Assembly (NCBI GenBank): GCA_907165135.1
Contig: OU015567.1
Span: 14,322,001-14,386,000 of the forward strand
Reading direction: 5' to 3'
DNA length: 64,000 nucleotides
Source: Oikopleura dioica
Taxonomy: Eukaryota; Animalia; Chordata
The position numbers and the translations under genes were made by a program. Of this stretch, positions 19,787-60,026 are shown in pieces (positions within the stretch are counted from its first letter, which is position 1; each line of letters begins with the position of its first letter). The notes under the pieces are model-generated. The model saw nothing but the letters and a program-made list of their open reading frames with translations. It did not search any database and was not told the origin of the DNA.

Positions 19787-20164
19787 ATAAAGAACAACCT
19801 GGAGTGAAATCAACGTTGTAATTCTTTGCAATCTCAATCAGATAGTTCTCCACCAGTGACCTCTTCGACGTGCTGTTTCAGCTTGTCCTGTTGTTTCGTC
19901 GAAATGTGTTTTCGACAATTCCCTGTCGAAAATGCTGGATGTGTTCCTTGCCGTATTTCGTCATGAGCTAATCTACGACTGTTTTTCGTCCTCAAAGTGT
20001 ATCTACTGTAGGATTGGTCCCTCGTCTATTAGACGTCTAACATATTCAAAACGGATTAGTAGCCCTTAAAAGGGCTTGTTTCTGGGCATGTGAAATGCTT
20101 CGAGATAGAGGATGCAGAGGACAACTGAATCAAGTGAAGGATGAACTAGGGAACCCTAACTCGC

Positions 20165-20553
20165 TGAACGAACCTCAAGACTACACAGAGAACCGCAATT
20201 TATCTAAGCTAACGAACCTGCAAATAAATGAGACAAACAAAGTATTTAAAGAAAATTGATTTTATTCAGGATACTTCAGCATGTCTGCCATTAGCAGGAA
20301 GTTTATTCTTCACGATTTTCATTTCCCTTTTCTTGGGTAAATGTGAAGGCGATTGATCTGCTAAACCGCTCTCTTATTGAGAACGATTTAACAGGATCAG
20401 ACATCCCGTCCTAAAATTCAAAAGTCAGCAAAATCTTCCAAAGAAACGACTTTCTTACCTGGAGATAGGTCCTGTTCGGACTGTCAAAATCCGAAGACTG
20501 ACCTGCCCCTCGGCTTGAGCCCTGACATCAACAAAAATTCTAGAGATTTTTTC
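20165..20553 (-). repeat. Segment duplicated in inverted orientation at about 38291-38680
   Basis: Near-identical stretch of about 380 bp including a gtaaga..tttag intron and an aataaa. Confidence 0.9.
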
Positions 20554-20952
20554 GAAAAATAACAAATCTGTGCAATTTTTGAGTTTCCTCGAGAAAATCG
20601 TCTTTGAATGACTCTTGTTCTTGTTTTGATGAATTCATTGAAAAAAAGCTGCTTCAAGTCAGTTTTTCTGAAGAGTGCATGAAATAATTTGTAAAAATAA
20701 AAATTTTTCATAATTATAGTTGATGAAGCTATCTCGTTCACGTAAAACACGATTTAACAAAGAAAATTTCAATTCTTTTAATTGAAATCATGGAAGAACA
20801 CACGAAACGCTTCTTTGGACGATACCATTGCCAATTGACAAGTAGCCAGCTATTTAGATCAGTTCTGTTAACACTTGTTGCTCAGATAATGCCACATAAA
20901 ACATGAAATGCAGCAATCAGGTATGAAAAAGTGGGGAATTTTCAGTAAAGTC

Positions 20953-21030
20953 TCTAGAATTGTTTTGAAATTTTTGCCAAAAATTTCATCGAGGGTTGTC
21001 TCCCTCACATCACTCCCCAGAGTATATAAA
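20953..21030 (+). promoter_or_regulatory. Histone H1 promoter (tctaga, agggttgtctccctcac, TATA)
   Basis: 17-mer at 20992-21008 is identical to 59622-59638 upstream of H4, with the same 22-nt spacing to the end of the TATA box. Confidence 0.75.
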
Positions 21031-21086: not shown

Positions 21087-21590
21087 ATGGTTCCAACTCC
21101 AGCTACCGCCGCCAAGGCCAAGACCCCTTCCCGACCCACCTTCACCGTCATGGTCCGACGGGCCATTGCCAACCTCAAGGAACGCAACGGTTCTTCCCGA
21201 CAGGCCATCGAGAAGTGGATCATCGCCAACTACGGCGTCGAGAAGGGTGGCCATCACCTCCGACTTGCTCTCAAGAAGGGCGTTGAAGCCGGAACCCTCA
21301 TCCAGGCCAAGGGTGTTGGCGCCAACGGTTCCTTCAAGCTCAAGAAGGTCGCTGAGCCAAAGAAGCCCGCCAAGAAGGTGATGAAGAAGAAGGCTCCCGC
21401 CAAGAAAGCCACCGCCACCAAGAAGAAGGTCACCAAGAAGGTGCCCAAGGTCTCCGCCGGCAAGAAGACCACCGCCACCAAGAAGGCCCCAGCCAAAAAG
21501 ACTGTCGCCGCCAAGAAGCCAGCTGCCAAGAAAGCTGCTCCCGCTAAGAAGGTCGCCGCCAAGGCCAAGCCTGTCAAGAAGGCTAAGTAA
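21087..21590 (+). CDS. H1: Linker histone H1
   Basis: Winged-helix core (KERNGSSRQAIEKWI..LRLALKKGV..GVGANGSFKL), K/A/P-rich tail, intronless. Confidence 0.97.
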   Translation: MVPTPATAAKAKTPSRPTFTVMVRRAIANLKERNGSSRQAIEKWIIANYGVEKGGHHLRLALKKGVEAGTLIQAKGVGANGSFKLKKVAEPKKPAKKVMKKKAPAKKATATKKKVTKKVPKVSAGKKTTATKKAPAKKTVAAKKPAAKKAAPAKKVAAKAKPVKKAK

Positions 21591-21617: not shown

Positions 21618-21633
21618 GGCCCTTTTAAGGGCC
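21618..21633 (+). terminator. Histone 3' stem-loop (H1)
   Basis: ggccct-ttta-agggcc followed by acaaa. Confidence 0.95.
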
Positions 21634-55486: not shown

Positions 55487-55656
55487 CTAGCAATAAAAAT
55501 TCTATTGCGATAAAGCAAAACAAACAGTATAAAAAGAAGGGAAAGAAGGAAAATTGTCTCTAGAAGGATGCTTGTTGTTCTTCTCAGCTGACAGTATATA
55601 AGCGTGTTTTCTAAATTTTCAATCTCATTTCATTTTGTCGAAAACAAGAAAGACTG
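55487..55656 (+). promoter_or_regulatory. Duplicate of the H2B promoter and 5' UTR
   Basis: Colinear with 57398-57573, including tctctagaaggatgcttgttgttctt..ctgac.gtatataagcg; the H2B ATG context aaagatg reads aaagactg here. Confidence 0.85.
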
Positions 55657-57230: not shown

Positions 57231-57570
57231 ATTCCGTTTAACTTCATCGAGACATGCTGCGTATGGAATAAAAACGAACGAAACTCGATTAATGAATCAT
57301 AAAAAGAAACAAGAAAAAAACTTTCTTCCTTGATTTCAAGTAAAAAAATATTCAACAAAGTCTTCTGTCTGTTCCTCGTTGTTAAAATTCTAGCATTTCT
57401 AGACTAAAATTCTAGTGCGAGCTAAAATCAAAACAAATATTGAAAGAAGGGTTGAGGAAAGAAGGAATTATCTCTAGAAGGATGCTTGTTGTTCTTCCCA
57501 CCTGACTGTATATAAGCGCGTGTTTTTCCCATTTTCAGTCACATTTCATTTTTGTCAAAAAACAAAAAAG

Positions 57571-57915
57571 ATGCCCAAGAACGTTTCCAAAGCCGCCAAG
57601 CCCGCCGCCGGTGCCCGAAAGTACCGAAAGGCCCGAAAGGAGTCCTTCGGCATCTACATCTACAAGGTCCTGAAGCAGGTGCACCCCGAGCAGGGAATCT
57701 CCACCAAAGCCATGTCCATCATGAACTCGTTCGTGAACGACATCTTTGAGCGAGTCGGCTCCGAGGCTTCCCGATTGGCCCAGATCAACAAGAGATCTAC
57801 CATCTCTTCTCGAGAGATTCAGTCGGCTTGCAAGCTCCTTCTCCCCGGCGAGATTGGCAAGCACGCCATCTCTGAGGGAACCAAGGCTGTGACCAAGTAC
57901 CAAGCTTCTAAGTAA
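57571..57915 (+). CDS. H2B: Histone H2B, divergent short-tailed variant (114 aa)
   Basis: [71 protein letters not shown]; intronless. Confidence 0.97.
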
Positions 57916-57942: not shown

Positions 57943-57958
57943 GGCCCTTTTCAGGGCC
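57943..57958 (+). terminator. Histone 3' stem-loop (H2B)
   Basis: ggccct-tttc-agggcc. Confidence 0.95.
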
Positions 57959-58449: not shown

Positions 58450-58869
58450 ATGGATAAGTTTTTCGAGCAAGACCACCCTTTTCAATCCGTTGTAGAAAAT
58501 GCAAAGAAGGAAAAAGGGGAGTTCCTTGCTAAGGATCCAAAGCATGAAGGAAAAATTTGCGAATACGTAGATGAATGGCTTGACAGGCTTGAAAGTAAAT
58601 AAATGATTTTTCAAATTAACTTTATAACTGCTTATTTAGACAACTACGATTGCGCTGAGTACGAGGACAGATTCGATGAAATTCAAGGTCAGTATCGACG
58701 ATTGATGAGTAGTGTTTGACTGTGAACCTTTATATAAGATTACCTTGACTATACCGCCGATTATTACGGATGCGGTCTTGAACTTTGTGGCCTCACTGCT
58801 GGAGCGGAACAAGTCGCAACAACTACTGCGCCGCTCTTCTTGACTCTTCTGCTTTGGCTTTTCAAGTGA
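58450..58869 (+). CDS. 3' exons of a probable GPI-anchored/TM small protein; 5' part (about 57990-58450) unresolved
   Basis: Three exons in phase via GT-AG introns, ending CGLELCGLTAGAEQVATTTAPLFLTLLLWLFK-TGA. Confidence 0.5.
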
Positions 58870-59017
58870 ACAGCTTCTTGAAGAAACCTTCTTCTACTCG
58901 CTACTTCTGAAGTAGAACTTCATACTTACGTATGGCTTTCATTCATTTATTCCAAATAAATCAGCTTTGATTATATGTCGATAGCTGTCAACTCGACGAT
59001 AGCTGTTCAATTTTTGT

Positions 59018-59033
59018 GGCCCTTAAAAGGGCC
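59018..59033 (-). terminator. Histone 3' stem-loop of the H4-like gene
   Basis: Minus strand ggccct-ttta-agggcc-acaaaaa about 35 nt after the stop. Confidence 0.93.
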
Positions 59034-59067
59034 GATTTAAAGACCCAAAGGTGCAAAATCCTCGAAT

Positions 59068-59349
59068 TTAGCCACCGAGTCTGTAGACGATTCGTCCTTT
59101 TTGTTTCAGCGAAGTTAGAACATCCATGGGAGTGATCTTCTTACCCATCTTGTTCTCAAAGCACATTTCCAAAACGCCAAGAGATTCTTTGCAAATTAGA
59201 CCAGCTACTCGCTTGACTTTGTCATCTTTGAGTATCGAAGAGAGTGATCTTCCTTCAACCTGGGGTCGCTTTTTTACCAGTCGATAAATCTTAGAGCCTC
59301 CTTTGCTTGATCCCTTTTTCAAGTGTTTTTTCCTTGGTCTTCTACCCAT
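59068..59349 (-). CDS. Highly divergent histone H4-like protein (93 aa) with internal deletion
   Basis: VKRVAGLICKESLGVLEMCFEN and KKITPMDVLTSLKQKGRIVYRLGG align to H4 [22 protein letters not shown] and [24 protein letters not shown]; intronless; stem-loop present. Confidence 0.85.
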   Translation of the reverse strand: MGRRPRKKHLKKGSSKGGSKIYRLVKKRPQVEGRSLSSILKDDKVKRVAGLICKESLGVLEMCFENKMGKKITPMDVLTSLKQKGRIVYRLGG

Positions 59350-59399
59350 TTTTGTGGTTTTAAGAAAATCAAGTTTCAATCTTTGTTTTCCATCCCTAC

Positions 59400-59660
59400 T
59401 CTAGAAACAGCGCTTATTTTGAATTCTTTCAAGGAGTAAACAAGGGTGAGAAGAGATTTTCTCGGCGGGTTGTCTCCCTCACCGTCTTCCCCACTTGTTT
59501 TTTTCCACAATTGCTCTAGAAACAGTCAGCTACAGTTAATCCATCAGTTGCAGTAAACAACAATATGAAGCGACTCTATCGCTCTCTAGAACTGCTTGTT
59601 GTTTTGTCAAAATCGGGCAGCAGGGTTGTCTCCCTCACAGACTTCCCCTCGAAATATAAA
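59400..59660. promoter_or_regulatory. Bidirectional histone promoter region between H4-like and H4
   Basis: gggttgtctccctcac at 59467 and 59623; tctaga..tgcttgttgtt; TATA at 59655-59660; minus-strand ataagcgctgtttcta resembles the H2B promoter motif. Confidence 0.7.
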
Positions 59661-59711
59661 CAACAGCCTAAGCCACACTGGCCACACTTCACTCAAAGTC
59701 AAATTTAGTGA

Positions 59712-60026
<315 letters not shown>

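Follow-up and report, generated by a model that had tools for sequence, protein, structure and literature searches.

Genes and signals at the locus

The window (the whole stretch of 64,000 nucleotides that was analysed) comes from the Okinawa Oikopleura dioica assembly GCA_907165135.1. It contains an H1t-type linker histone gene, an H2Bt.2-type testis H2B gene, the testis histone gene H4t and, as divergent partner of the last of these, an open reading frame for a 93-residue derivative of histone H4, here called the variant (Table 1). The preliminary description of this DNA, made from the letters alone, had placed an intact, intronless frame of 93 codons head-to-head with an H4 gene at a distance of 365 bp. 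The frame is indeed open from start to stop on the minus strand and requires no intron, and the spacing from ATG to ATG is exactly 365 bp; the partner, however, is the published H4t and not a plain H4. Its translation has Ile21, Met22 and Ser69, the three substitutions that define H4t, and includes both of the published H4t sperm peptides (16 and 11 residues long). H4t is testis-specific and differs in three residues from canonical H4; mass spectrometry has detected it in sperm (Moosmann et al. 2011, PMC3156773). Equating the variant with the already catalogued H4t can be dismissed, as H4t is the adjoining gene.

Table 1. Features of the histone locus and their positions in the window.
Feature	Positions	Strand	Evidence or remark
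H1t-type linker histone gene	21087-21590	plus	promoter element at 20994-21008, stem-loop at 21618-21633
H2Bt.2-type testis H2B gene	57571-57915	plus	translation; stem-loop at 57943-57958
AATAAA, possible downstream poly(A) signal of the variant	58946-58951	minus	sequence reading
Histone 3' stem-loop element of the variant	58994-59038	minus	exact pattern match and Rfam RF00032
H4-derived variant, coding sequence with stop codon	59068-59349	minus	open reading frame (ATG at 59349, stop at 59070-59068), matches to H4, alpha2 gap, core pN/pS
Divergent spacer shared by the variant and H4t	59350-59714		365 bp, ATG to ATG
GGTTGTCTCCCTCAC, distal copy	59468-59482	plus	119 nt from the variant ATG, antisense to the variant
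GGTTGTCTCCCTCAC, proximal copy	59624-59638	plus	91 nt upstream of the H4t ATG
H4t, published testis- and sperm-specific H4	59715-60026	plus	translation, substitutions, sperm peptides
H4t stem-loop	60058-60073	plus	pattern match, Rfam

The variant carries a hairpin of 16 nt, GGCCCTTTTAAGGGCC (59033-59018, minus strand), 34 nt 3' of the stop codon and flanked by AAATC and ACAAA. This hairpin, described earlier as a perfect histone stem-loop, matches the histone pattern exactly and is recognised by the Rfam Histone3 model (RF00032) with 31.8 bits and an E-value of 6.6e-07; the H4t stem-loop scores about equally (33.4 bits), and both lie below the gathering score of the model, which is 34. Together with their flanks, the stem-loops of the variant and H4t are identical in 25 of 26 bases; elsewhere, the two 3' untranslated regions cannot be aligned by eye. 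An AATAAA sequence is located 67 nt beyond the stem-loop on the minus strand. O. dioica histone genes are reported to combine a stem-loop with a poly(A) signal further downstream, and the AATAAA may act as the latter. With its lack of introns, a stem-loop near the stop codon and a short, divergent, shared promoter, the variant has the features of replication-dependent-type O. dioica histone genes, and it keeps this apparatus, canonical stem-loop included. Its base composition (GC 0.43, GC3 0.42) is near that of intergenic DNA (0.41), compared with a GC of 0.59 and a GC3 of 0.67 for H4t.

The H2Bt.2-type gene, 1.1 kb from the variant, aligns at 83% with the gene directly upstream of the Norwegian H4t. 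Both H4t and H2Bt.2 are published as testis and sperm histones (PMC3156773), and the variant is located in a cluster of the male-specific set described by Moosmann and co-workers in 2011. The genomic setting fits the male-germline connection made in the preliminary description.

Other elements were observed nearby. Between H2Bt.2 and the variant lies a small intron-bearing gene (58450-58869, plus strand) with acidic, cysteine-containing exons and a hydrophobic C-terminus; the Norwegian spacer lacks it. A public 777-residue gene model crosses this region, ends at 58869 and looks like several fused genes. The sequence just upstream of H2Bt.2 (57405-57570) recurs with 79.5% identity some 1.9 kb before it, at about 55496-55653. 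The H2At.3 partner gene of the Norwegian locus has no equivalent in the window. At 20061-20076 on the minus strand there is a weaker histone-type stem-loop, AGCCCTTTTAAGGGCT, with a GC stem of 5 bp, similar to what the published table gives for H2A.3 and H2A.4. It lies downstream of minus-strand open reading frames (20100-20990) that are arranged head-to-head with H1t and have no histone similarity.

Relationship to histone H4

In a BLASTP alignment with a single 11-residue gap (E = 9e-12), the variant is 38% identical to H4t across the final 60 aligned positions. An exhaustive phmmer search of 1.84 billion cluster representatives returned 61 matches, all containing canonical H4, many of them in fused or extended gene models; the best match (E = 1.4e-11, 42% identity) pairs residues 12-93 of the variant with residues 9-103 of H4. 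Against the Protein Data Bank, HMMER matched 84 sequences, and all 60 among the matches listed were named histone H4 or H4 chimera. H4 clusters were also the nearest to the variant in the language-model Atlas. Identity to H4 is 36-41% in a MAFFT alignment and reaches 43% over the stretches matched by phmmer. No Pfam family was found in the variant at E-values up to 1; H4t matched PF15511, PF02969 and PF00125. With 93 residues, the variant departs from the near-invariant H4 length of about 102-103.

As judged from these matches, the variant is a descendant of histone H4 by gene duplication. That H4 alone was found among the 1.84 billion representatives and in the listed structures upholds its earlier assignment as an H4 paralogue, and an identity of about 40% deserves the term radically divergent that it had been given. 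A word-indexed homologue search gave no match to the variant, an exact look-up of protein products had no record of it, and scans of metagenomes and viruses with six peptide patterns revealed no relative. In none of the collections searched was anything nearer to the variant than canonical H4. An origin from a viral or transposon histone was rejected, the nearest sequences being canonical H4 and not viral histones.

Catalogue status and distribution among O. dioica lineages

An earlier listing as a known variant would have spoken against the preliminary description, but the variant is not in the O. dioica histone catalogue. The list of 2011 comprises 47 histone genes, among them six for H4, namely five H4.1 genes and H4t (PMC3156773). 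For O. dioica, a paper on chromatin from 2017 and a review of H4 variants from 2024 name H4t alone, a further literature search found nothing else, and the reading frame of the variant is not covered by any public gene model. Three oligo-dT bulk RNA runs and one single-cell run, searched at 85% likeness, yielded six reads, all on stem-loops; the variant, the spacer and the intron-bearing neighbour were equally free of reads. A stretch of 401 nt was matched by no indexed RNA run. The published list of sperm peptides, from the Norwegian population, has none from the variant (PMC3156773).

A look-up of the H4t protein retrieved ten loci, including the Norwegian reference (L001), a second Okinawa copy (L002), the window itself (L003) and a metagenome contig (L004). 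The Norwegian O. dioica reference is GCA_000209535, according to a published paper. In it, and in the identical contig L004, H2Bt.2 and H4t are separated by 640 bp, and neither tblastn (E-values up to 10) nor sensitive blastn picked up any remnant of the variant in this spacer. The short metagenome contigs with H4t have the Norwegian arrangement upstream of it, not the variant. No orthologue was found in any collection searched, and the variant has so far been seen only in the Okinawa lineage of O. dioica. In the Norwegian reference, which is an older assembly, the frame of H2Bt.2 (L001:4830-5330) appears to shift and only a 67-residue product is called, probably through an error of assembly.

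The second Okinawa H4t copy (L002:5763-6368) is located on the same chromosome, about 0.17 Mb from the window, and encodes an identical protein; the published catalogue lists a single H4t gene (PMC3156773). Its pS to the window copy is 0.086, it has both GGTTGTCTCCCTCAC elements, and its divergent partner is a gene for a TPR protein. Neither a second copy of the variant in the window nor a relic of it upstream of this H4t was found. The pS between Okinawa and Norwegian H4t is 0.17, against 0.73 between the variant and H4t. This difference may reflect an old duplication followed by loss of the variant in the Atlantic lineage, or else faster synonymous change in the copy after relaxation of codon bias. 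On the evidence of its sequence, the variant is an uncatalogued, lineage-restricted, shortened H4 paralogue.

Retained and lost parts of the histone fold

The 11-residue gap follows a Glu-Asn pair and corresponds to Val65-His75 of H4 in both the MAFFT and the HMMER alignments, and BLASTP places a single gap as well. The loss of about 11 alpha2 residues is thereby confirmed, as are the deletion of Tyr72 and His75, which fall within the gap, and the change of Tyr88, which has become a threonine; Arg92 is replaced by glutamine. In nucleosome structures, alpha2 of H4 has about 28 residues, Leu49-Ala76. That of the variant would have around 17, and its histone fold is not complete. The retained parts are the Val-Lys-Arg of L1, the first half of alpha2, L2, alpha3 and the C-terminal GR-x-x-Y-x-x-GG; all the short motifs listed in the preliminary description (VKR, GL, GVL, EN, T-x-MDV, LK, GR, Y and the terminal GG) are present. 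The alpha1 region keeps its hydrophobic pattern, and Arg35, Arg36 and Arg40 are lost from it.

The first 11 residues of the variant are new and very basic. After these, K-G-S-S-K-G-G-S-K aligns with Lys8-Lys16 of H4 by MAFFT and HMMER, although the alignment is weak here (pN 0.77). In the same weakly aligned region, the basic patch Arg17-Lys20 reads I-Y-R-L, with Arg17, His18 and Lys20 replaced by Ile, Tyr and Leu. The tail is therefore not wholly rewritten, as had been claimed, since a remnant K-G-x-x-K-G-G-x-K of the Lys8-Lys16 segment persists; what has gone is the Arg17-Lys20 patch and most of the alpha1 arginines. Overall, the protein contains 26 lysines and arginines against seven aspartates and glutamates, has a pI of 10.7 and includes two cysteines, where H4t has none.

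The variant might be a true nucleosomal H4 that pairs with H3, perhaps H3t, and forms an altered, less stable nucleosome in spermatids or sperm, as the short H2A variants of mammals do. Arg45 in L1 and the L2-alpha3 block with its T-x-x-D cap are retained, and so is the C-terminal motif, which in nucleosomes pairs with the H2A docking domain. A deletion of 11 residues takes out about three helical turns (1100 degrees), so that the helix face would be kept, as the preliminary description had pointed out, and the sperm nucleosomes of O. dioica contain many testis variants. However, an alpha2 of about 17 rather than 28 residues would put L2 and alpha3 where alpha2 of H3 crosses in the handshake, and both the H3-H4 handshake and the H4-H2B four-helix bundle should fail. 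The contacts to H2B made by Tyr72, His75, Tyr88 and Arg92 are deleted or changed, the basic patch and the alpha1 arginines are lost, and no Pfam histone-fold model matches. AlphaFold2 models of the monomer do not yield a confident fold either; with pLDDT values of 46 (from a 10-row H4 alignment) and 52 (from the single sequence), they are too poor to favour or exclude one. We consider such a nucleosomal H4 unlikely. From its sequence, the variant is best read as probably a male-germline H4 derivative that would be incapable of forming a normal H3-H4 pair.

Signs of selection on the reading frame

The variant was compared codon by codon with its paralogue H4t over a well-aligned core of 49 codons, in which 20, nine and 29 differences fall on the first, second and third codon positions. 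The core pN is 0.28 and the pS 0.73; synonymous sites are saturated, replacement sites are not. Among 26 core replacements, 13 have a positive BLOSUM62 score, where neutral drift would give 6.3 (P about 0.001), and the summed BLOSUM62 score is +1, against a neutral expectation of -18 (P = 0.013). When H4t was allowed to drift neutrally to the observed nucleotide distance, the reading frame stayed open in 0.3-0.6% of the runs, which simulated substitutions only; the variant also has several insertions and deletions relative to H4t, all in frame. The 44 N-terminal residues, on the other hand, have a pN of 0.77 and are as diverged as random sequence. In this paralogue comparison, the variant shows signs of selection, not of decay.

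Taken together, the codon-position skew, the conservative replacements, the survival of the frame and the match of the stem-loops argue that purifying selection would have acted on the frame, the protein core and the 3'-end signal of the mRNA through most of the history of the gene. As no orthologue was found and the Norwegian spacer is empty, the case for selection is built on a single comparison, made with a paralogue and at saturated synonymous sites. We regard the variant as likely to be a real, selected gene.

A duplicated H4 that has lost its function, perhaps through the alpha2 deletion itself, and has not yet acquired a stop codon or a frameshift would explain several observations. The Norwegian locus has no variant and no orthologue is known, there is no transcript or peptide on record, the gene is unannotated, its GC content has fallen to the intergenic level (0.43 against 0.41), and its N-terminal half has diverged to randomness. 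Loss of 11 residues from the central helix would be expected to kill a histone. There is also a precedent in the same species: H3sh, a truncated H3 gene of cluster VIII, is like the variant a truncated core-histone gene inside a histone cluster, but its expression was undetected and it was called a likely pseudogene, whereas the sequence statistics of the variant point to selection. A relic of this kind is hard to reconcile with a frame that neutral drift would keep open in less than 1% of simulations even when insertions and deletions are ignored, with core differences of 20, nine and 29 over the three codon positions, with conservative replacements at P values of about 0.001-0.013, and with a stem-loop that, flanks included, keeps 25 of 26 bases despite saturated synonymous sites. 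The stop codons, frameshifts, equal change over codon positions and decayed signals that mark pseudogenes are not seen. Since frame, core and stem-loop are all preserved, a relic would fit only if its function had been lost very recently, and we judge it improbable.

The shared spacer and the expected site of expression

The spacer contains two copies of the 15-mer GGTTGTCTCCCTCAC and two CTCTAGAAACAG boxes. Exactly three copies of GGTTGTCTCCCTCAC are present within the 64 kb. Two of them precede start codons, that of H1t by 93 nt and that of H4t by 91 nt; the third is the distal copy in the spacer. Of the ten H4t loci fetched, eight have the proximal copy, among them the Norwegian one and several on metagenome contigs; the other two have no match. 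The proximal copy lies about 90 nt upstream of the ATG wherever the distance could be read. The distal copy occurs only at the two Okinawa H4t loci among these ten. The histone-type promoter motifs of the preliminary description are thus real, with three exact copies of GGTTGTCTCCCTCAC in 64 kb; because both spacer copies are oriented towards H4t, they are not specific to the variant.

Short bidirectional promoters are reported to co-regulate the histone clusters of O. dioica. By this rule, and since the variant has the apparatus of a histone gene, including a divergent promoter in common with H4t and a stem-loop, it would most likely be co-expressed with H4t in the male germ line. Its expression in testis is, in our estimate, slightly favoured. 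The loops of the stem-loops add a small hint of co-expression in the male germ line. Those of H1t, H4t and the variant in the window read TTTTA and that of H2Bt.2 reads TTTTC; all seven genes with a TTTTA loop in the Norwegian table are male-specific or testis-enriched (Supplementary Table S1, PMC3156773). The Norwegian H4t and H1t have TTTTT in that table.

The orientation of the two GGTTGTCTCCCTCAC elements would also suit a gene that is functional without being germ-line specific, whether expressed at another stage or in another tissue, or acting mainly as a transcribed partner that shapes the activity of the H4t promoter. At the second Okinawa H4t, the same two elements stand opposite a TPR-protein gene, so genes without any relationship to each other can share the spacer. 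The signs of selection, which cover both the protein core and the stem-loop, nevertheless favour a translated mRNA processed by SLBP, and co-regulation within clusters is the published rule; we regard this reading as very doubtful.

Proposed origin and function

The best explanation of these data, to which we give a probability of roughly one half, is that the variant is a selected gene, derived from an H4 duplicate, that is used in the male germline and acts outside the canonical octamer. The gene would have arisen by duplication of an H4 gene and been kept by selection in the Okinawa lineage. It would be transcribed with H4t in the testis from their common divergent promoter, and its mRNA would be processed at the 3' end in an SLBP-dependent way through the stem-loop. 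The protein could then enter the nucleus by means of its basic N-terminus, which resembles a nuclear localisation signal, and act outside the canonical octamer as a small basic chromatin protein. Alternatively, it may serve in spermatogenesis as a mimic of H4, or as its competitor, towards factors that read the H4 surfaces it has kept.

A role outside the octamer is suggested by the shortened alpha2 and by the deletion or change of Tyr72, His75, Tyr88 and Arg92. That the variant acts outside nucleosomes altogether is plausible, if somewhat short of an even chance. More speculative is the full proposal of a lineage-specific, stem-loop-regulated 'half-fold' H4 derivative of the male germ line that forms no octamers and either packages sperm chromatin or acts as a decoy for H4-binding factors; we mention it as a tentative possibility.

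The preliminary description had envisaged an H4 paralogue that forms no octamers and destabilises or replaces nucleosomes, for example in sperm chromatin transition. Its account of H4 ancestry, divergence, alpha2 loss, gene signals, selection and setting in a male cluster holds; the proposed part in octamers, nucleosomes or sperm is a reading of the sequence. The term sperm chromatin transition needs care, because O. dioica sperm is reported to retain nucleosomes and to have no protamines.

Comparison with other histone variants and significance

H4 variants are rare, and the known ones keep the whole fold; an internal deletion in alpha2 is unusual for the most invariant of the histones. H4t has the same species, locus and H4 origin as the variant, the same intronless structure and stem-loop, and the same male-specific cluster. 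It differs from H4 in only three residues and has peptides in sperm, whereas the variant is about 40% identical to H4, has an alpha2 shorter by 11 residues and is known from genome sequence alone. Human H4G is likewise a lineage-restricted, shortened H4 paralogue, but it is 85% identical to H4 and is missing only a C-terminal tail, while the variant keeps its C-terminus, has an internal deletion and is far more diverged. Fungal H4E and trypanosome H4V are H4 variants with diverged tails; in contrast to the variant, they have a full core domain without an alpha2 deletion, and H4E has its own intron pattern.

The mammalian short H2A variants (H2A.B, H2A.L, H2A.P and H2A.Q) are shortened, fast-evolving, lineage-restricted proteins of the male germline, thought to loosen or replace nucleosomes. 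The variant resembles them as a shortened, fast-evolving, lineage-restricted histone paralogue that is probably tied to the germ line. They belong to another histone family, however, and have a complete fold, having lost the C-terminal docking region and the acidic patch, where the variant has lost half of the central helix of the fold.

Histone complements differ between the cryptic lineages of O. dioica; what was catalogued in Norway therefore cannot stand for the Pacific animals. With a life cycle of five days and sperm that retains nucleosomes, O. dioica offers a tractable case in which to ask what binding capacity is left to a truncated histone fold. If the proposed reading is true, an H4 member would be added to the short, fast-evolving histone variants of the germ line; even H4 could be recruited for a new job, and the variant would be the first H4 remade by losing half of its central helix.
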